Positions 9,143 to 26,772 of a stretch of DNA of 29,510 bases are shown piece by piece (position 1 is the first letter of the stretch; the number at the start of each line of letters is the position of its first letter). The stretch lies in NCBI GenBank assembly GCA_000388065.2, contig KB932207.1; one strand, 5' to 3'. The DNA is from Fonticula alba ATCC 38817 (Eukaryota > Protista > Nucleariida). Both the position numbers and the translations under genes were made by a program. The notes under the pieces were generated by a model. That model was not told the DNA's origin. It saw only the letters and a list, made by a program, of their open reading frames with translations, and did no database searches.

Positions 9143-11720
9143 CTACCGGGCCTGCCAGTCTCGCCGGACGCCGATATACTCGATGACCGGGACCGGCTGG
9201 CCGTCGGGCACCGGGTCCAAAAACAGGAGGCTAATGGCCACAACCTGTGCCATGCAGGCCCCCGGGCGGCTGTCTGCCGGCACCTCGGCGGGCTGGAGCG
9301 CACACAGGTCCACGCGAAAGAGGCCGCCATTCTGCTCGCCGTCCACCACGATGCCAGCATGGTGGCCGGTGCCCCTCTCACTGATCCACTCAATGTCGAC
9401 GTAGTACCGCGTGGCGATGCTGAAAACCGGGTCCCGGCAGGAAGACAATCGGAAGGCAATCGGAAGGGTGGTTGGTGAGGCAGGCGGGCAGGCGGGCAGG
9501 CGGGCAGGCGGGCAGGCTGATTGGCCGGAAGTGCCACTCATTTCAGTACCTATTCAGGGGGAAGAGGTGCCCCCCGGAGGCAATCTCCACCCCCGAGCCA
9601 AAGAGCCAGGCGGCATTGGGCCCGGGCCCACCATCCGGCCCATCACCGGGGGCCAGGATGCGGATGAAGTCCCCGGCGACCGGGCGCCTGGGCAGACGGA
9701 AGTAGCACTCGCGGGCGCGAGCCAGCACCGACGATGGGTCAGCATAGGCGCCGATGTCGCCGGTGCTGAAGGAGCTCTCCAGTCGGAAGCCCAGGCGCTG
9801 GAGCTCCGGGCGACAGGGCGAGTGTCGCGGTATGTCGGCCGAACGCGGGCCCATGTCCCGGCCGACCCGGACGCCGCGATGCCACCGGCCGTCCGGGGGG
9901 TAGGGGGCCGACTGCCGGCCGGCCGCCGGGTCGGTGGCCGCCAGCACGGTGAGCGGCTGGTCCGCCAGGAGGAGCAGCCGCTCCACCGGGCGAACAGTGC
10001 GCAGGCCGATCTCCAGCAGGGACTGGGCCAGGTACTCCACCACGGGCCAGTCTTCCAGGGGGTTGCCTCCGGGGACCCGGTGGGCCAGGGGATCTGGCTG
10101 GCGGTGGAGGCGGTTTAGATCGAGGAAAGACCTGGCCCCAGGTGGGACGCCCGGAAGTGGCGAAGCACCGGCACGGCAAAGGTCGGTCAGTAACGGCCCG
10201 CAGGCGCGACACATGGGCATGCTCACGGGCAAATGCGCACACGGCCAACAGCGGGAGGGTCAGACGCTCGCGCGTTCGCAGCAGGAGTGTATGTGGGCAG
10301 GGGGCAATGTCGCCCGGGGGGCAGAGGACCGGGGAGGTCGGCTGCTCGGCTTCCTGCCTCCGTCGCCCGGCCTGCTCGGCCCGGCTGAGAGCCATGGAAC
10401 GGCCGACCGGCAGGTAGAAGCGCCGGCCATGGCGAGTCCAGTCGGCCGCTCGGTCGAACAGATCGCCCGGCAGCTGGTGGAGGATCTGCCCTCGAGCCCC
10501 GGCGGAGGTGGGTGAAATGGTCAGGCCAGGGGGTTGCTTGCATTTGGGGCGGCATCGGCACAAGCCGGCCATACCGAGCTGTCGATGATGATGGCCAGGC
10601 AATTGGCAGCGTGGAAGACGGCCGCCTCATTGTCGGCCTGGAAGCATTCGTGCAGGTCGGCCATGCTCAAGACCGGCCGCGGGCAGAGGACCGGCCCGCA
10701 CTCGGGGGAGCTCGGCACCGCGGCCAGCAGGCGCCCCAGCGAGTGGGCCAGTTCCGCAGCCAGCGGCAGCCCGGCGGCGAGCCCGGCACCCGGGCGCACC
10801 GGAGACGGGGCCAGCACCAGGCGGAAGCCCACCGGCCGCGACCGGAAGGCCGGCCCGCCGACCGAGCTGCGCTGCCAGAGGGTTTCCACGCGCGACGGGG
10901 CCGGCCCGAGTGGGCCCGACCCGGGGGTGGCCTCGGTCCACTCTTCGGACACCTCGATCACCTGTGGCCCATGGAGCATGTCATCGGACAGCTCCATGCG
11001 AAGTCGCCAATCGGGCCGGGCCGCGGCGGCGGCGCCGCCGCCGCCGCCGGCTGCCGCCACCGGTGCCAAGTCCAGCAGGACATGAGTCTGAGGGCGGAAC
11101 TCCTGTTGCCAGGATGTCCACACGCGGACTTCGGCCGGCCGGAGCCCACTGCCGCCGGCCACACCGGCCGCCAGGGCCCCCAGGTCCGGCCATTCGGCCA
11201 GGCGCCTCAGGGCAATGTCCGTGTAGTGTGCGGCGGCCGCCCAGCCGGGGACCTGGTTCTGCAGGAAGTCCGGAGCCGGCGCCGGGACCAGGATCGGCTG
11301 GCTGGGGTCCGAGAAAAGCAGGACCCCCAGGGCGTCCGAACATCGGGCCACGGCGGCCGAGCACTGCGTTGACAGCGAGTGCAGGATGTAAGTCAGGTGT
11401 CGGGTTCCGGCCGAGGACACGGGCTCGACCGGCGCCCGGCCCGGCGGCGGGGCCTCCGGTGCCGAGACCCTCGGGGCTGGTGCCATGCCCGGCGGGCTGG
11501 GCATCGGCCTGCCCAATGGCGACCGACCGGCCCCTCGGAGTCGAAGTGCCGCCACAAAGGCCAAGATGGCCATCACACCGATGGTCAGCCGGAGCAACCG
11601 GCGATTGTTGCGCAGCCAAATGGACGTCCGGATGCGCAAGCGCCTGGCCGAGGGCCCACCATGGCCGGCATGGGCCCCGGGCAGGCCGGGCCCCGGGGGA
11701 AAGAGTCGCGCCCGGGGCAT
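9143..11720 (-). CDS. Type II membrane protein, divergent MGAT4/GnT-IV (GT54)-like with C-terminal lectin-like domain
   Basis: ATG at 11720 (aacaaaATG). TM anchor LLRLTIGVMAILAFVAAL, then a Pro-rich stem. Introns 10574-10486, 10240-10132 and 9549-9420 are all in phase. HLTYILHSL...LGVLLFSDP resembles MGAT4 YLIETLHSL...VIVVFIGET; YFRLPRRPVAGDFIRI...WLFGSG resembles FFWAITPIAGDYILF...YLFHSG. Confidence 0.6.
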
Positions 11721-12677
11721 TTTGTTGGCCGGGACCAGGCCGCCAGGGAGTCGGCGTCGAGCTGGGCAGGGAGGGAAATCCGCCAGGAAAGGCCGGGGCG
11801 ATCGTGCACAAGCGGGGAGGGCACAGAACGCGGCAGGGAGGGGGGGGGGGGGAGGCAGAGAGCTTGCCAAGGGCAGGGATGTCCAGCTGGAGGCCGGGCC
11901 AGGGGGAGGGGGGAGGGGACTGAGCCAAAAATTAACCCCCCACCCACAGACCCAGCGCCTGGCCGAAGGACAATGCTGCACCTGACGCCTGGCACAAGGT
12001 CAGGAATGCAGACCTCGCCTCCCCCCCCCTCTCTCTCTCTCCCGGGCCTTGGAGGTCTCAAACAAGTGCGGAGCCAACTGGCTCGCGGGGCGGTCCCGCT
12101 GGCGACAGCCAGAGGCCGTGGCCCAAAGTGAGGGCGCGCGCGCCACTCAAGGCCCGATCCGACCAATTCGACACCATGCTCTCGGTCCCTCCCGTCCCTC
12201 CCCCCCCCCCCCCCCCCCCCCCCTCTCTCTCTCCCTACCCCTCCTCGCGCATGATCTCTCCCCAAAGGTTCGAGCAAAGCAGTTGTGTCCGACGCGCGCG
12301 CGCCAGGCCGCGCTGGTTCTGGATGTTCTCCAGCCGGGTGTCTTCTCGATGGAGATGTATGCAAACAGGCGTGTATTCTCTCCAGAAGGGCGCAGATGCC
12401 AATCCTCGCGCTCAGGCGTTCAGGGGACCGGCCGAGGCGGTGGCCAAAATACCAACACCAGGAGGGCGGAGGGGGGACCGGGGGCGAGGGCAGGCGGCCA
12501 GTCGAGCCTGGCCTCCCCCCCCCCCCCCCCCCCCCCCCCCGCGCCCCCCGGGGAGGGGGACATAAAATAACACACCCCCGCTGGCAGATCGAAGGAGGGA
12601 AGAAAGGCACGCCAAGGGAAAATACCCGCGCAGACGGCACTTCAAAAGGCTTGTTGTGGGCTACATTGACACGTGAC

Positions 12678-14384
12678 CTACCCACGCCGCTTTACCGGCT
12701 CGGTCGGCACGCGCTTGTAAAATTGCTGCCGCATCCAGGCCACACTCTGGCGAACGGCCTCGTCGGAGATGGCGCGGACATCATCCAGGGTCCAGGGGGA
12801 GAGGACAGGGCTGGATTGGGAGGCCAGGTGTGCCGGGGGCATACTTATCACGGAGTACCCGTGCACCCCGGCCGGCGGGAGCTTGATGTTGATGATGTAG
12901 TCACAGGCGTGGAATTGCGGCGAGTAGGGCCGGTCGGTGCAAAAGAGGATCGGGTCGACGGACCCCGGCTTCTGGGCCTCGGTCTCGTTGAGCAGGTCCA
13001 TCGTCTGCTGGGCATACTTCATGACGGCCTCGTGGAAGGCGTACTTGACCGCGCGGCGGCTGTAGTCGCGCACGGCGGCCCGATTGTCGACGGACCTTTT
13101 GCTGGCTTGCACGATGACCCGGTAGCCGAAGGGGAGGTTCTTGAAGCCCGCTGGAGGAGGGAGGGCGGAAGGTGCGGGCAGCAGGGAGATCCGGGAGCGG
13201 AGGGGCGGGGGGGGGGGGGGGGGGATAGGTGAGTACACAGAAGGAGAGACAGCGAGAGAAAGAGAGAAAGAAGGGAAAAGACAGACAGACACAGGCAGAC
13301 ACAGGCAGACACAGGCAGACACAGAGAACAAAAGAAAAAAGGAACACAGGAACACAGTGCCCCGGCAGAGGAAGAGGCAGCACCCCGCAGCTCGGGGCAA
13401 AGACGTACGATCATGCCGGCGAAGGGGATCCCACGGCGCGGCAAGGATGGTGAAGCGCTCGCACTTGTGGATGACCTTGGAGTTGGACTTGGAATGCCCC
13501 TGCTTGATGGACTCAATGCGAGAGACCGGCTCGCTGGTTAGGCGCACCGGGTCGTGAATGCCGATGTAGTACTTGGGGAAGAGCTCGGCCAGGCGCTGAT
13601 GCAGGCGATTGGCTCGCCAGTTGGAGCTCAAGCGGGACGGATCCTGGGCCATCGACAGCCCGGCCACAGGGTTATCCTGGAGGAGGAGCTGTGAATTTTG
13701 ATATAAATTGTGCGTCGGCTCCAGCACCATTCGCCGGAGCTGATCCGCCGGGACCAGGCCCGCGGCTGACAGCAGCAGCGGCGAGATGCTTTTGGTGATG
13801 ACTTGCGACAAGCGCGGGTGCATTCGAGACAGGGGCGTGTGGTTGGAAATCTGCTGGGTGTAGTGCGGCCCCGACAGATGCCCATGCGAGGAGAAGTCCT
13901 CCTGAAGGCGCCCATCGCGCCTGGAGGCCGGCTGTGCGTATCGATGCCGATCGCCGCTTCGCGAGCGATTGTCACGCTGCCGCTCATACGACACGGCCGT
14001 CGGCAGCGAGGGGAGCCCCTGCAAATTGTCGCTAAAGCTCTGGATGAGCACGCGCTCGGTGCCCACCGGCTGATAGCGCTGCTTCTGGCCCAGTGCATCG
14101 CCAGGCATCGGGGATTTGTCACCCCGACGGGTGCGCAGACGCTCCGGCTCCGGCTCCGGCTCGCGGCGACGTGTGCCCGGGCGCTGGCCCTGCGGGACAC
14201 GATCGAAGGAGGCTGGCAGGCGCAAGGAACCCGTCGAGTTGCCCGGTGGCTTGGAGGCGCCATCGTTTGCCGCATTTCCGGATCTCGAGGAAAGCTGCCG
14301 CGCCGGGGTCCACTGGACGCTCAGCAGCCCAGGCCTCGAGGCCAGTCGATGAAGAGGGCCCCGTAGCGGGGGCGGACAAATCAT
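12678..14384 (-). CDS. rnpA: Putative mitochondrion-targeted protein with C-terminal bacterial-type RNase P protein (RnpA)-like domain
   Basis: ATG at 14384 opens an Arg/Ser/Leu-rich, acid-free N-terminus. One in-phase intron, 13408-13151 (GTACGT...CAG). C-terminal FPK...RLT...RFTILAAP...YRVIVQASKRSVDNRAAVRDYSRRAVKYAF...DYIINIK parallels E. coli RnpA FPRELRLLT...QITILG...[28 protein letters not shown]...DFVVVAK. Confidence 0.65.
   Translation of the reverse strand: MICPPPLRGPLHRLASRPGLLSVQWTPARQLSSRSGNAANDGASKPPGNSTGSLRLPASFDRVPQGQRPGTRRREPEPEPERLRTRRGDKSPMPGDALGQKQRYQPVGTERVLIQSFSDNLQGLPSLPTAVSYERQRDNRSRSGDRHRYAQPASRRDGRLQEDFSSHGHLSGPHYTQQISNHTPLSRMHPRLSQVITKSISPLLLSAAGLVPADQLRRMVLEPTHNLYQNSQLLLQDNPVAGLSMAQDPSRLSSNWRANRLHQRLAELFPKYYIGIHDPVRLTSEPVSRIESIKQGHSKSNSKVIHKCERFTILAAPWDPLRRHDRTSLPRAAGCCLFLCRGTVFLCSFFLLFSVSACVCLCLPVSVCLFPSFSLSLAVSPSVYSPIPPPPPPPLRSRISLLPAPSALPPPAGFKNLPFGYRVIVQASKRSVDNRAAVRDYSRRAVKYAFHEAVMKYAQQTMDLLNETEAQKPGSVDPILFCTDRPYSPQFHACDYIINIKLPPAGVHGYSVISMPPAHLASQSSPVLSPWTLDDVRAISDEAVRQSVAWMRQQFYKRVPTEPVKRRG
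13286..13322. repeat. Intronic decamer tandem repeat (ACAGGCAGAC) x3
   Basis: acaggcagac repeated three times in the intron of the RnpA-like gene. Confidence 0.9.
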
Positions 14385-15013
14385 GGCTTCGGCGAACGGC
14401 GAGAGGAGGACCCGGAGGAGAAGGAGGAGAGCGAGCGAGAGAGCGAGCTGCACGAAAGGAGAGCGGTCGAGGACCGAGGACCAAGAAGAGGAGAGGGGGG
14501 CGCTGCAGGCGGGGCGTCTGCCCTCCAAGCCCCCTCGTGCACGCTGATGAGCTGGCACAGGACACATGGCGAGCCACTCTTCGCCCCGTGCCCGCCGCCC
14601 GCCCGCCCGCCCCCCCTCCCGGGCCCTTCCAAGGGCCGGCACCACGACAGCCATGCTCCCGCGCCTCGGCAGCGACAGCCCATTTCCACCCGAGGCCCAG
14701 ACATGGAGACGAGCTGGAACATTCGTTGGCACTTGTCCATGCGGCCGTCGGCTCCCCATGCTGCCGGCCTCCTCTGCACCCCCTTGCCCCCCCCCCCCCC
14801 TCCGGCTGGACGATGCCCGGGTACGACCTGAGAAGAAGGGCCACCATGCCCGGGCCCGGGCGCATGCCCGGAGGGTCACAATTCCCTCCCTCCACCCCCC
14901 ACCCCCTGTCTCCTTCCCCGTCCTTTCTCTGGGGGCTGCCTCTTCTCCCTTCGCCCTCCCACACCCCCCCCCCTCCTCCCTTTACCTCTCCAATCCGAAC
15001 GCCAGTGCACATC
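14385..15013. promoter_or_regulatory. Putative bidirectional promoter between RnpA-like (-) and DDX47 (+)
   Basis: Head-to-head ATGs about 630 bp apart. Purine-rich + strand near 14400-14510 switches to pyrimidine-rich near 14880-14990, as expected for divergent 5' leaders. Confidence 0.5.
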
Positions 15014-17036
15014 ATGAGCGACTCCGAGGACGACTTCCGCGGCCACCTGTTGTCCGGCTCGGACGCCAGCCATTCGGACTCCGACTCCGATGCCGAGACC
15101 GTCGAGCAGAAGCCCGCCACCTTCGCCGACCTGGGTCTGAATGACATCCTCCTGCAGGGTATGTGAATGGTGGCCCGGCGCCCTCGACAAGCGGAGGCCC
15201 TTTGACGTGGGCTGCCTGTGGCGATTTCCTTTCGCGCAGATCGTTGACTCACTTGTCCCCCCTCCCCCCCTCCTGCTCCAACCCACTTGCCCACCTCCCC
15301 CTGGCTGCCTCTCGCCCCTGCTGCCACGCCACAGCCTGCGCTCAGGTTGGCTGGACCAAGCCCACGCCCATTCAGGTGGAGTCCATTCCCTCGGCCCTCA
15401 AGGGCCGCGATATCATCGGCCTGGCCAAGACCGGCTCCGGTAAGACCGGTGCCTTTGCTCTGCCCATCCTGTCGGCTCTCCTGAAGAAGCCGGTCCCCCT
15501 TTTCGCCCTGATTCTGGCGCCGACCCGGTGCGTTGGCTTTGGCCCCCCCCCCCCTGAAGAACGGGCCAGGCCCGCCGTCACTCCCACCCCACAGGCCCGC
15601 TGACCTGCCTTGTCCTCTTCCCCCCTTCCCCTCCTTCCCTCCCCCCCCCCTCCCTTGCTCTTGTGCGACGCCGGGCTGGCAGAGAGCTTGCCTTCCAGAT
15701 CCATGAGAATGTTGAGGCCCTCGGCGCGCCGATCGGCGTCCGGTCGGTGGCCATCGTCGGCGGTGTGGACATGATGAGCCAGTCGGTGTCACTCGCCAAG
15801 AAGCCGCACGTTGTGGTGGCCACCCCCGGTCGTCTGGTGGATCACCTGGAGAATACCAAGGGGTTCTCCCTGCGCACCACCGGCTTCCTGGTCCTTGATG
15901 AGGCCGATCGCCTGCTGAACAGCGAGTTCGAGGAGGAGGTCAACAAGATCATCAAGGTCATCAGCAAGGAGCGCCAGACGCTGCTCTTCTCGGCCACCAT
16001 GACCGACAAGGTGAACAAGCTCCAGCGCGCGGCTCTGCGTGATCCGGTCAAGGTGGAAGTGGCAACTAAGTACGCGTCCCCCCCCCCCCCTCCCCCCCCC
16101 CTTCTCTCCCCCTCCCTCCCCTTTCTCCCTCCCTCATCCCTGTGTCCTCTGCCTGCCGGTTGGAAACTTATCCCCCCTCCCCGTCCCCGCCCCCGTCCCT
16201 CGGTGTGAACTTCGGCTGGCCCGCCCCTTGGGCTTCCCCCACTGCAGGTTCTCCACTGCCGACAAGCTTCTCCAGTCGTATCTCTTCATCCCGGCCAAGT
16301 ACAAGGAGGTCTACCTGACCTACCTAATCAATGAGTTTGCCGGGCATGCGAGCATCATCTTCGTCAACCGCCAGCACTCGGCCCAGACCTTGGCCCTGAT
16401 GCTGCGGGCGCTTGGTTTCCCGGCCATCCCGCTGCATGGCGGCCTGTCGCAGCCCAAGCGCCTCGGCGCACTGAACCGCTTCAAGAGCGGCACCCGCAAC
16501 ATCCTCATCGCCACCGACGTGGCGGCCCGTGGTCTGGATATCCCCAGCGTGGACCTGGTCATCAATTATGACCTGCCCCAGAACAGCAAGGACTACGTCC
16601 ACCGGGTTGGCCGTACCGCCCGTGCCGGTCGCTCCGGCAAGTCCATCACCTTCGTCACCCAGTACGATGTCGAGGCCTTCCAGCGCATTGAGCAGCTCCT
16701 CGGCAAGCAGATGGATCTCTACTCCGGCTGCGAGGAGGCGCAGGTTCTCCTGCTGCTGGAGCGCGTCATGGAGGCCCAGCGTGTCGCGGCTCTCGTACGT
16801 TCACCGGTGTCTCCCTGCCTCCCCCGATGGGGGACTCTGCCCGACGCGCGATGACTGACCCATCCTCCCTACCATTTGCACACACACACACACACACACA
16901 GGAGTTCAAGGATAGTGGCGGCCTGAAGCGCCGTCGCTCCGATGAGGAGGATGGCGATGCCGCGCCCAAGAAGAAGGCCGGTCCTTCGGCCGGCAGGGGA
17001 GGGAAATCCTCCGGCCCCATGAAGAAGCGCCGCTAA
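15014..17036 (+). CDS. RRP3: DEAD-box RNA helicase DDX47/Rrp3 (18S rRNA processing)
   Basis: Q-motif [38 protein letters not shown] and [10 protein letters not shown]; [13 protein letters not shown] is typical of DDX47/Rrp3. Five GT-AG introns; basic C-terminus ends MKKRR* (TAA 17034-17036). Confidence 0.95.
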
Positions 17037-22030: not shown

Positions 22031-23146
22031 CTACGAGGAGTGTGCGGCGACGGCGACGGGCGCCGCCGGGGGGATGGACGCCGCGGCGGATGTGGCGGCC
22101 GTGGCCGTGGCCACGGCCGTGGCCAGCGCGGCCGCCGCCGCCGCCGCCGCACTGGCATCCGCCGGACTGGTGCCTTCGGCGTTGCGCGCCATCCGCACGC
22201 TGCTGAGCGAGTCGCGGAACTGATCGACCGACTTGATGCGTGCCTTGCCTTCCAGGCCGGGCGGAGCGAAGACCTTGGTGCGGCGGTCCGGGCGCCGGGA
22301 CCCCTGCCACCGGGCACCGTTGCCCTTCAGGAAGTTCTTGTTACGATGGACGAAGGAAGACCCCGGGGCGTTTGGATCGTTCGAAATGCAGGCCACAGGG
22401 ATGTCCGAGTTCCAAATGTCATCGGGGATTTGCTGAGCCTCCAACGACCGGAAGAAGAGACCTGCATCCCTTGACATGGAGACATTCTTGACAAAGGCAT
22501 GGAAGTGACTCCGCAGGGCATCGGCCGGCGTGCGCTCGTGGATCTTTGGGGGGGGGGGCAATCGAGAGTCAGCCGGAAGAAAAAAGCGAGCGAGAGGGAG
22601 AGAGGGGGAGAGAGGGAGAGAGAGAGAGAGAGACGGGGGCATGGGGGAAGGACGGGGAAGAGGGTGTGGGAGAATGGACACACCCCGAAGAAGAGATCCC
22701 ACTGGCCGGTGAACGGCTGCGTAGATGTGGAAGGAGGGATGTTGGCACCGATGCTGGCGCCATCTAGGAAGGATTCCATCTGCACGGAGTACAACTTGAA
22801 TTGCAGGTTTGAATGGTCCTGCGCAACGAACTTGGCGGCCACCGGCTCCACCGGGCGCGAGCACCAGGACACCGATGCACTCGGCTTGCTGGAGGCGGCC
22901 ACCGCCTCTTGTAGGGCTGCCTGTCGCTCCGGCGACAGGGTTGGAGCACAATGGTGCAGCAACTTCTCCACCATCCGATGGGAGAGGCCATCCCCGGAGA
23001 ACTCGTCCGAGCGCTCGTCAGCCCCACCTCCAGCGGCAAGGATTTCCAGGTGCCCGGGGCGGATCTGAGAGTTGATCATCAGGGCCACAGACTACGCACA
23101 CCACCGAACCGGGAGGGAGGGGGGGCAGGGAGGAAAAGAAGAAAAA

Positions 23147-23212
<66 letters not shown>

Positions 23213-26200
23213 GCATTGTCAGGTCCCAGCGTGCGAAGCATGATCTGAGCAAACGCGCGACGGCCCCGAAAAGAGGACACGAAAGAACGACAAGACACAA
23301 AGACGCGGAAAAAAAAAACAAAGCCGAGAAGGCAACAAACGCACCTGCCCAGGGAAGTCGGCCGAAATGCGCTCCAACAACTGCTCGAAGATGGCCAGTC
23401 CACGGCGGAAAACCAAATCACCGAGGTCCGCATTCCCATAGAGCGCCTGCTCCATGTCCCGTAGGGGGATGAACTGGAAGCCGAAGGCCTCATCGGTGTT
23501 GTGGTATGCCACCATGACGCCCTCCATGCCACCGATGCGCACCTGCAGCGAGTACTTCATGAAGGCCGACCGGATCATGTCGTAATACTCCCGCTCGAAG
23601 GAGGACAATTGCCCGGACATCCGATGGAGCCGGTACTTGACATTGTTTTCGTAGTCCTTGACAAAGTTCCGAATGGCCAAAGTCGCTCGGGTCTTCAAGT
23701 CGAAGATGCGCTCCGGGTTCTCCGGGTCATGGCAATCTAACTGGGACCGGAGCAGCAGCGACCCGGCTCCGAAGTAATTATATGCCGAATGCACGTCGCT
23801 CGGATGTGGCGGCGCCAGATCCACAGGCGTGGTCCGGTCCTCCCGGGAGTCCAGGTCGACCGCGCTGTCGTGGGTCAGGTGCCAGTCGAGGAAATCCTCG
23901 AATTCCGGCGTCGTAGACGTGAGGAACTTCTCGAACACATGGCCCTGGTGAAAAAGCGATGTCAGAAGACGCCCATGGGCGGAGGAGAGAGAGAGAGAGG
24001 GCGGGAGGGCAGCATGAAGGGAGGAGGAGGCCGAGCGGAACAACGGCAAGGCCAACCGCTGGTTGGGCACATCTCAAAAATACACGCCAGCGCACCATGC
24101 GTGAGAGAATGCTTTCCGTAGACAGGATGGCCGACGAGTCGACCGCATAGACACCGGTCTCCTTGCGGACCAGGTTCACGAGCACCGGCTGCCGGGTGGC
24201 TCGGGTGAAGCGACGAGTCTGACAGCCAGCACATGCGCGTGTGGGGGGGGGGGGGGGGGGGGAGTACAATTCCATGAACAGCAGCCACCAAGCGGCAAAC
24301 GGGCAGGAGAGCATACACACAGGATGCATGTGAGAAAGGCACATTACGGGCGGTTGGGGGGGGGGGGAGGGCACCAAAAAGATGAATCAGCCTTTGCGCA
24401 CCTCCTGGCTGATGGACTTCGAGATGAGCGGCGGCGGGGTGATGAACCGGTTGCTGCTCATGGTGAAGTAGATGTGGCTGAGAGAGGCACTGACCGAGGA
24501 GGTGGACCCAATGAACCGGACACCCTGCTCCACGGCAAAGCGCTCCAGGGTCTTATCCTTGGAAGAGGGAGTAAAGGACAGCCCGGTCTTGAAGCCCTTC
24601 ATTTCAATCAGCTGGTTGAGCTTCATACGCCGCAGGGTTTCGGCCTTGACTTTCTCCAGGCTCCGAACCTCCGGTGGCAGGTGCATCGTCTTCGACTGGA
24701 AGTCTCGCACTACATGAACCCCTGGCTCATGGATGACATGGCTCAGTGCCGGGTTCAAGACTGGGATGTCGCCGCCCTTCGGCAGGTCCAGGTCTGGCAA
24801 TCCGAGGATCAGATGAGGGGAAGGAGGGATCAGTTGCCCTGGTGGACATGCGTCGGAGGTGGAGAGAGGAGGTGGGAGGAGAGGCGCCGAGAGACGCCGA
24901 GAAAGAGAGTGGGGAGAGAGAGAGAGGGCAGAGAGAGCGAGAGCGAGAGCGAAAGGAAAAAGGCACGAAAGATGCCGACGTACGGCCCATTTGGAACTTA
25001 TCGGCAGCCAGATACTGAAGACCATTCGAGGCAGCAAACATCTCTGCCACCCGGGCAACACGCGCACGGCCCGCATCATCGGCCAGGAGTTCGCGGACAT
25101 GCTCCTCGCCATCGAAGTATTTCACCACCTCGGGGGGGAGGTTATCCAGGCTGATGCTCTCGATGAAGGCCACAGAAGCGTCAATGAGGGCCGGGTCATT
25201 TTCCACCGTGGGAATGGCCTCCGAGGCAGTCAGAAGCTCGATGGCGCTACCCTCCGGCAGGAACCACGGCCCGGCAGAGGCCAATTCGCCGAGGGACTTC
25301 TTTTTCTTGTGTGGCCGGCCGGCATCCTCCTGGCGCGAAACCACAGCCGAGGACCATGCTGCCTGCGTGGTCCCCTGGTGGCCAAGCCCCATCCAGGGAG
25401 CCTGGGCTGGGACGCGCTTGAAGAGGACGCCCTCGCCTTCAATCGGAGCCGGAGCCGGAGCAGCAGCGCCCCCGGTCGAGACAGGAGCCGTGGCAGAGGA
25501 GGAGGATTTGGTCGAGGAGGAAGTATTAATGAAGGCATGTGTGCGGGGCGACTTCGGGGCCGATCCCGCACGCTGCGGCGCAGACTGGGCCCGGGCAGCG
25601 GACTCGTGCTTCTTGGGAGAGGGGGTTCCCGTGGAGGAGTTTGACTCCCTGGCGGCCGCGGAAACTGTGGCCTTGGTCACGGTGTCGGAACTGGTGCCCG
25701 ACTGGGGATTGGAAGGATTGCTGCGACTGCGGGACGCTTGGTGGGCCGGAGCCCCGGCCGGATGGTTATGCCGGGGACGACGCCGGAGAGTCGAATGGTG
25801 GGGATGCTTCGCACGGGAGGGATCCCGAGCCGGGGCATCCGGCTTGCCAGCGTTCGGGGCGTTGGAGTTAGCGACCGCCGAAACAGGCGACTTACCGACC
25901 GTCTGGGGCTCGGGCTTGCTCGCGGCTGAGTGGCTGCTCGAAACAGCGCCGGCAGTGTTTTTGTTGTTGCTGTTGCCGCTGCTGCTGCTGCTGGTGCTGC
26001 TGCTGGTGCTGCTGGTGCTGCTGCTGCTGGTGCTGCTGCTGCTGGTGCTGCTGTTGTTGTTGCTGCTGCTGGCACTGCTGCTGTTGTTGGTGCTGTCCTT
26101 CGCCTGGTTGCTCTTCGCCTGGTTGGTTTTGGCGTGGTTAGGGTGATGGGAGGGGGCTCCGGTCGAGGACCTGGCATGCTGACCATCGGAGCGACGTGGA

Positions 26201-26772
26201 TGCTGAGACTGCCGGGCAGGAGTGGAGCCCGAGGTATGGCGGGAGCGGTTCCCATGGGCATTGGTGCCGCTCGGTGCATTGCCAGCACCGGGATTTGATC
26301 CGGCAACGACACCGGATCCGGGCTCCGCACTGGAGCCAGCAGCGGCGGAAGTGCCACCAGCTGGCGAGGGATGCCGCTGCTTGTTGTGCCGCGTGTGATT
26401 TGGGCGATGCCTTGGCCTGCCAGTGTCCGGGCTACCGCCAGAGTCCGATCGTCCGGCGGGGCGATTGACCGGCTGGGATCGACGATCGTGGTGATGCTGC
26501 TGTGAGCCCTGGTGCGGCGTGCGGCGAGTGGCGCCGGCGGCCTGTGGCTCGACCTTGGCACTTTGCGGAAGCGAGCTGTAGAGCGCTCGGCCAGGACCGA
26601 ATCGGGTCAGCAGCGATTGATCTCCCATGGAGGCCCCAATCCGCGCCAGCACCGGCTGCACCAACCCGACTGGGGCTCCTGCCGGGGTGGACAGGCCTCC
26701 AGACAAGCCAAGATGGACATGCTGCAGCTGTGCCACTCGTGGCCGGGAGTATTGGAGGAAGGCGCGAAACAT
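22031..26772 (-). CDS. PET127: Pet127 mitochondrial 5'-3' exoribonuclease (PD-(D/E)xK fold) with long low-complexity N-terminal extension
   Basis: Family motifs FIGSTSS, GHVFEKFLT, LLRSQLDCHD, IFDLKTRA and SFEREYYDMIRSAFMKYSLQVRIGGMEGVMVAYHN. Presequence-like start MFRAFLQYSRPRV at 26772. Six exons checked in phase; TAG at 22033-22031. Confidence 0.92.
23147..23212. repeat. Intronic (GAT)n microsatellite, about 22 units
   Basis: Uninterrupted gatgatgat run inside a Pet127 intron. Confidence 0.95.
25935..26105 (-). repeat. Coding AGC/AAC repeat encoding a Ser/Asn/Thr tract in Pet127
   Basis: (gct)n/(gtt)n on the + strand encodes STNNSSSASSSNNNSSTSSS on the - strand. Confidence 0.85.

Follow-up and report, generated by a model that had tools for sequence, protein, structure and literature searches.

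Does the nuclear genome of Fonticula alba, a member of the Holomycota, still encode a descendant of RnpA, the protein subunit of bacterial ribonuclease P (RNase P)? The question is raised by H696_04588, a minus-strand gene annotated as a hypothetical protein of 543 residues (P0001), which lies in a 29,510-nucleotide stretch of nuclear F. alba DNA (scaffold KB932207.1 of assembly GCA_000388065.2; this whole stretch is referred to below as the window). An initial annotation, made from the letters of the DNA, had read the spliced product as a mitochondrially targeted protein ending in an RnpA-like domain. Our analysis of sequence and predicted structure indicates that the C-terminal domain is probably a very divergent RnpA homologue. 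The strongest evidence for this homology comes from the neighbours of the domain among the predicted proteins of the ESM Atlas.

Three parts of P0001 were compared with the Atlas by language-model features. Atlas clusters are labelled with thousands of different Pfam families, and of these PF00825, the family of RnpA, was the one named in advance. With residues 310–543 as query, PF00825 was found on 86 of the 100 nearest clusters, and with residues 325–482 on 99 of the 100 nearest named clusters. Residues 325–404, which do not include the helix aligned to the RNR motif of RnpA, gave PF00825 for 98 of 100 named clusters, the top matches being bacterial N-terminal RnpA fragments. When the stored ESMFold models were compared, the best neighbour every time was a PF00825 cluster from Zoopagomycota with a template modelling (TM) score of 0.52–0.56 (runners-up, 0.33–0.43), and a TM of 0.55 to the fungal PF00825 cluster was reached using residues 325–404 alone. 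The length aligned to the Zoopagomycota cluster grew from 64 to 113 to 153 residues with the length of the query; 153 aligned residues exceed bacterial RnpA, and the modelled match seems to include lineage-specific additions. The second structural match for residues 325–482 was a DNA_gyraseB cluster, a family which we take to share the S5-domain-2-like fold with RnpA.

The nuclear gene H696_04588 is transcribed and spliced once. In three RNA runs, contigs connect position 13150 directly with 13409, and the annotated protein uses the identical junction (...RRHD joined to PGFKNL...). Thus the in-phase removal of 13408–13151 proposed in the initial annotation is borne out by RNA as well as by the database gene model, and the contigs keep the motif frame across the joint. 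The intron is 258 nt long, in phase 1, bounded by GTACGT...CAG, 78% pyrimidine and without an in-frame stop, and is uncovered by RNA contigs apart from an 18-base poly-C piece from another contig. Read on the gene strand, the intron contains a homopolymeric C run (window 13206–13224), and the 3' flank a tract of ~26 G residues (12515–12548); both tracts were skipped as repeats in read placement, and an unrelated high-depth contig matches the C run. At the 5' end, the RNA contigs stop at 14544 without reaching the annotated ATG (14567), and no ATG occurs between 14544 and 14384. Because of this transcript extent, ATG 14384 is a likelier start than 14567, as had been suggested, and the gene model probably begins there. 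The resulting coding sequence (14384–13409 + 13150–12678, minus strand) has a translation identical to P0001 residues 62–543, a product of 482 aa. The 61 extra N-terminal residues of P0001 include a leucine-rich hydrophobic stretch. From 5' to 3' along the gene, the features are as follows.

14385..14567, minus strand: annotated N-terminal extension (P0001 1–61), the translation of a CT-rich leader; probably 5' untranslated region.
14265..14384, minus strand: likely start codon (14384–14382) and presequence-like first 40 residues, by composition.
13596..14264, minus strand: low-complexity linker rich in R, S, L, P and Q, ~223 residues, by composition and the lack of a family match.
13409..13595, minus strand: exon 1 part of the RnpA-like domain, with FPK, RLT and predicted alpha1, beta1 and beta2 (FTILA); P0001 325–386 plus the first base of codon 387.
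13151..13408, minus strand: spliceosomal intron in the beta2-beta3 loop of the domain, by RNA contigs and annotation.
12864..13150, minus strand: exon 2 part of the RnpA-like domain, with beta3, the RNR-like helix, 27 inserted residues and beta4 (DYIINIK); P0001 387–482.
13032..13124, minus strand: beta3 and the RNR-like helix (P0001 396–426), the sole segment to score significantly with bacterial RnpA profiles.
12681..12863, minus strand: C-terminal tail (P0001 483–543), with a predicted long helix at ~507–530 (window 12791–12720) aligning to RnpA alpha3.
12678..12680, minus strand: stop codon TAG.

Counted from ATG 14384, the first 40 residues contain 5 R+K, 0 D+E, 6 S+T and 10 A+L. This basic, acid-free and S/A/L-rich N-terminus looks like a mitochondrial presequence, in agreement with the initial annotation, and the product is likely to be located in mitochondria. 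The linker has no Pfam or NCBIfam match, and its score against RnpA profiles is at or under that of shuffles. In total, ~263 residues lie N-terminal to the RnpA-like domain. By comparison, the C-terminal ~220 residues (P0001 ~325–543) are of ordinary composition and net basic, with a core net charge of +8.

Every RnpA element that had been quoted for this protein is present, in the proposed order and at the proposed positions: FPK at P0001 330, RLT at 342–344, FTILA at 372–376, YRVIVQASKR at 396–405, AAVRDYSRRAVKYAF at 411–425 and DYIINIK at 470–476. This series resembles bacterial RnpA/C5 (PF00825; PDB 1A6F, 1D6T, 1NZ0, 2LJP, 3Q1Q) in the order of its elements: an RL-turn and a hydrophobic strand are followed by a strand R-V-x-V-x-x-S-K-[KR], a basic helix A-x-V-R-x-x-x-[KR]-R-x-x-[RK]-x-x-F, a strand D-x-I-I-x-I-K and a C-terminal helix. 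The helix matches the RNR motif at columns A411, R414, R418, R419 and K422. Among the residues shared with bacteria, R397, K404, A411, R414, R419 and D470 are retained, and K-to-R405 is a conservative change. In contrast to bacterial RnpA of ~115–150 aa, the Fonticula protein has 482 aa, with ~263 extra N-terminal and ~60 extra C-terminal residues, and carries three insertions, of ~6, 12 and 27 residues, with the intron in one of them. Its gene also differs in being nuclear, spliced and outside the rpmH-rnpA-yidD-yidC operon.

The targeted profile comparisons used RnpA profiles of two depths, the first made from 19 diverse bacterial genes and the second from 138 sequences; 18 diverse rnpA genes were taken from mislabelled chromosomes in a plasmid collection. 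Against the bacterial RnpA hidden Markov model (HMM), hmmsearch --max, with all filters off, scored the whole domain at 5.3–6.0 bits, and a score of 6.0 bits was reached twice among 2000 shuffles and twice among 3000. A 50-residue segment holding beta3 and the helix scored higher, at 8.9–9.6 bits (9.6 bits was equalled by 4/3000 shuffles), and for the segments containing beta3 and the helix the real score was reached by 0–8 of 3000 composition-preserving shuffles. The HMM register was the one predicted, with R-V-I-V-Q-A-S-K-R ... A-A-V-R-D-Y-S-R-R-A-V-K-Y-A-F set against R-v-G-l-s-V-s-K-k ... A-v-e-R-N-r-v-k-R-l-i-r-e-s-f. Residues 397–429 were placed on RnpA beta3 and alpha2 both by hmmsearch --max and by hhalign, the latter yielding the register of the initial annotation despite its weak P value. 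Additionally, MAFFT placed D470–K476 on the conserved D-x-V-V-x-A-[RK] strand, so that hhalign and MAFFT separately recover this register, including beta4 (D470) and alpha3.

A profile alignment with lenient gap penalties gave p = 0.002 overall, carried mainly by beta3 and the RNR helix. By part, the values were 0.045 for the N-terminal section, 0.004 for beta3 and the helix and 0.17 for the C-terminal section, the last not above chance; all of these p-values are suggestive only, because the case was picked after many windows had been read. The real score was 50.6, compared with at most 39.4 for 72 natural six-frame decoys from the window.

Structure prediction was carried out with AlphaFold2 (AF2), both unaided and with a bacterial RnpA alignment. 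Without an alignment, the C-terminal region was modelled in the order strand-strand-strand-long helix-strand(s)-helix at a predicted local distance difference test (pLDDT) score of 45. With the alignment supplied, pLDDT was 57–81 for beta1 to alpha2 in a model conditioned on the hypothesis. An alpha3-like helix in the C-terminal tail is seen in both AF2 models, and MAFFT aligns it to alpha3. For the conditioned model, the top PDB matches (TM by target 0.37–0.49) were RnpA chains of S. aureus, T. maritima and E. coli, and the AlphaFold database (AFDB) matches include several "Ribonuclease P protein component" entries. Thus the proposed AlphaFold and Foldseek comparison placed RnpA chains at the top only when an RnpA alignment was given, the unaided model returning noise. 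The conditioned model indicates no more than that the RnpA fold can accommodate the sequence, the three insertions being predicted in loops and one of these coinciding with the position of the intron. Among the AFDB cluster matches was A0A7R9AGS1, a 180-aa "Large ribosomal subunit protein bL34m (Fragment)" whose residues 61–180 match the RnpA-like model; this entry could reflect a read-through from rpmH into rnpA, or a eukaryotic assembly contaminated by bacteria.

The first alternative to weigh is that H696_04588 encodes a fast-evolving, Fonticula-restricted protein without RnpA ancestry, in which an RNR-like helix and strands arose by chance in an arginine-rich alpha/beta domain, the language-model neighbours mirroring a shared surface pattern. 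Several of our results speak for this alternative and against homology. The Fonticula protein lies under every curated HMM threshold: hmmscan against Pfam and NCBIfam at E <= 10 matched neither PF00825 nor rnpA with the read-through, both exons, the spliced protein or the core, so the HMMER comparison with PF00825 that the initial annotation had proposed as a check came out negative for every form of H696_04588. Likewise, hhalign against 18–19 diverse bacterial RnpA gave P = 0.13–0.16 and a probability below 1%. An exhaustive phmmer search of residues 310–543 against 1.84 billion representatives returned the protein itself and three spurious matches, and two word-index searches found nothing beyond H696_04588; no homologue therefore emerged from two very large sequence searches. 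We dismissed the three phmmer matches as two tandem-repeat artefacts and a 2,255-aa bacterial secretion-signal protein. There was also no phmmer match for H696_04588 among PDB sequences, where the RnpA entries are all bacterial. In searches made to collect relatives, a bacterial RnpA alignment headed by a long Fonticula segment had 120 listed matches besides the query, all of them bacterial, and a related-locus search with E. coli RnpA reached Enterobacterales only. A BLASTP comparison with E. coli RnpA was set aside, since it aligned the wrong register.

The conserved residues themselves add to the points against homology. The RNR asparagine, present in 18 of 19 bacteria, is D415 in H696_04588, giving RDY for RNR; the near-invariant beta3 glycine is I399; and the equivalent of R58 is Y416, a tyrosine found in 2/19 bacteria. 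The helix agrees with the RNR motif at the A, R, R, R and K positions and, as stated in the initial annotation, departs from it at the asparagine; the protein lacks the strict pattern with N, while its beta3 and helix segment outscores ~99.8% of shuffles. After MAFFT alignment, 6 of 13 conserved columns were matched, a chance-level count that 56 of 300 shuffles (19%) equal, and a loose RNR pattern occurs 5 times in the 59,016 six-frame residues of the window, such patterns being common in this GC-rich genome. The unaided AF2 model, which alone gives no fold, had no meaningful match in Foldseek searches of PDB, AFDB, Atlas and VIA-wide. The Atlas scores are moderate (0.82–0.92) and uncalibrated for protein parts, the three queries overlap, and the surface pattern that first drew attention to the locus may also be what the features respond to. 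Selection of the case after many windows also makes a p of ~0.002 indecisive.

The protein contains, in addition, another RNR-like string, at P0001 ~300–330 (window 13578–13670, minus strand; G-L-S-M-A-Q-D ... W-R-A-N-R-L-H-Q-R-L-A-E-L-F), ~80 residues upstream and just ahead of the domain. MAFFT once placed the bacterial RNR motif on this upstream string, which illustrates the ease of RNR-like matches in such an arginine-rich protein and again counts against homology. We rejected the upstream register (residues 270–365), as its profile score is at chance level, being reached by 706 and 206 of 3000 shuffles; the string could be a chance match or a duplication remnant.

On the other side, three Atlas queries, one of them without the RNR helix, all reached PF00825 as predicted beforehand, with the same fungal PF00825 structural neighbour each time and an aligned length of up to 153. 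The extended beta3 and RNR pattern is unique within the window, and beta4 and alpha3 are recovered in register by MAFFT. We consequently hold a chance resemblance to be rather unlikely and homology to RnpA probable: the identity proposed in the initial annotation is favoured by the Atlas and ESMFold neighbours and weakly by the targeted profile test, but not by PF00825, NCBIfam or hhalign.

If the domain is an RnpA homologue, what might it do? In the product, a presequence would be followed by ~220 aa of disordered linker and then by a C-terminal domain of ~160–220 aa that groups with fungal hypothetical proteins of PF00825-like type. Once the protein has been imported into the mitochondrion, its basic beta3/alpha2 face, with its RNR-like helix (R-D-Y-S-R-R), would bind structured RNA and the cleft of the beta-sheet would bind single-stranded 5' leaders, as the corresponding surfaces of bacterial RnpA do (PMC4919922). 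In this way it would serve an RNA-based mitochondrial RNase P as cofactor in the cleavage of pre-tRNAs and of tRNA-like punctuation elements. Granted homology, such a cofactor role is somewhat more likely than not. The complete reading, in which presequence, linker and divergent RnpA domain make up an RNase P cofactor, is more tentative and falls a little short of probable. The suggestion in the initial annotation that an alphaproteobacterial-style ribonucleoprotein RNase P may persist in the mitochondria, with the added sequence making up for a reduced rnpB RNA, is conjectural. Reports on organellar RNA weigh against the cofactor role, as rnpB is absent from a review's list for the mitochondrial DNA (mtDNA) of Nuclearia simplex (PMC7194472), and basidiomycete mtDNAs are without an identified rnpB (PMC3790967), although Basidiomycota have PF00825-like Atlas clusters.

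These same reports bear on a second alternative, that the domain is a true relic of the RnpA fold repurposed as a mitochondrial RNA-binding or maturation factor that works without rnpB RNA; candidate roles include leader or t-element binding, mRNA 5' processing and ribosome assembly. Repurposing would fit the existence of PF00825-like clusters in Basidiomycota and the review summary of Nuclearia mtDNA, and also the loss of the two most conserved functional positions (N to D415 and beta3 G to I399), the large N-terminal extension and the several insertions. However, the basic helix residues that remain, R414, R418, R419 and K422, are those aligned to the RNR motif, and the RnpA of the jakobid Andalucia is also highly diverged, yet paired with an mtDNA-encoded rnpB (PMC7050145). 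We regard repurposing as a serious alternative, if a rather improbable one, and an RNase P cofactor remains our preferred function. A mitochondrial RNase P protein of the kind of S. cerevisiae Rpm2 or of PRORP, which would share the proposed role in 5' maturation of mitochondrial pre-tRNAs, has an unrelated fold, and its architecture is not seen here, since no Pfam family of any kind, PPR and NYN included, rises above threshold on the full H696_04588 protein.

Other eukaryotic RnpA proteins provide a further comparison. In the literature searched, eukaryotic RnpA is reported only from prasinophytes and from Andalucia, as a "highly punctate" ancestral feature (PMC7050145, PMC4919922). Like H696_04588, the RnpA of Andalucia godoyi (PMC7050145) and of prasinophyte algae such as Ostreococcus is a nuclear eukaryotic gene product that combines a leader of organelle type and an RnpA-like domain of high divergence. 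More is reported of these proteins than our data show for H696_04588: the RnpA domain model COG0594 recognises them, they accompany an organelle-encoded rnpB, and the Ostreococcus protein complements E. coli (Lai et al. 2011, through PMC7050145 and PMC4919922). Fonticula also differs in belonging to the Holomycota, for which no RnpA is described in the literature searched, whether fungal or nucleariid.

Nearest to the Fonticula protein, both by language-model features (0.88–0.90) and by predicted structure, are fungal Atlas clusters labelled PF00825, one from Zoopagomycota (254 aa, 82% of members Pfam-positive) and one from Basidiomycota (286 aa, 18%). They resemble it in being eukaryotic and longer than bacterial RnpA; they differ in that phmmer gives no link to Fonticula at E <= 0.001 and that the Fonticula N-terminal region is much longer. 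The view that few lineages are known to have an organellar RnpA thus fits the literature (PMC7050145) but not these clusters, and because PF00825-labelled fungal proteins are already in databases, the lineage gap is partly a literature gap. The Fonticula protein, if real, would be an extreme variant of a fungal PF00825-like family.

The surroundings of the gene include a divergently oriented DEAD-box helicase gene (PF00270 + PF00271; window 15014–17036, plus strand). Its start and the 5' end of the RnpA-like transcript are only ~450–470 bp apart, and a promoter region may be common to both genes. Three genes upstream of H696_04588 is a 1274-aa gene with a Pet127 domain (PF08634; window ~22031–26772, minus strand). 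Pet127 functions in mitochondrial RNA 5' processing; the presence of two candidate mitochondrial RNA-processing genes within 10 kb is probably a coincidence. The downstream neighbour is a called gene of 659 aa (window 9543–11720, minus strand) with no Pfam family on record.

How far could this finding extend? The proteins of fungal mitochondrial RNase P outside the budding yeasts have been described as unknown (PMC3790967), close Rpm2 homologues are limited to Saccharomycetales (PMC6097661), and PRORP is reported to be lacking in fungi (PMC10941002). A broader proposal is that a nuclear, mitochondrion-targeted descendant of alphaproteobacterial RnpA serves across Holomycota, nucleariids and fungi alike, as a mitochondrial RNase P cofactor and is the fungal subunit outside Saccharomycetales, with Fonticula holding an extreme form (RDY, three insertions and a 260-aa extension) that either works with a reduced rnpB or has outlived it; we consider this proposal doubtful in its full extent. 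Should the resemblance be due to chance, H696_04588 would be one more Fonticula orphan. If instead the Fonticula protein is of RnpA type and is linked to the PF00825-like proteins of zygomycete and basidiomycete fungi, a rare relic of bacterial RnpA would extend across Holomycota, lineages with a bacteria-like mitochondrial rnpB would gain a concrete candidate for their missing subunit, and the role of the protein where rnpB is absent would become testable.

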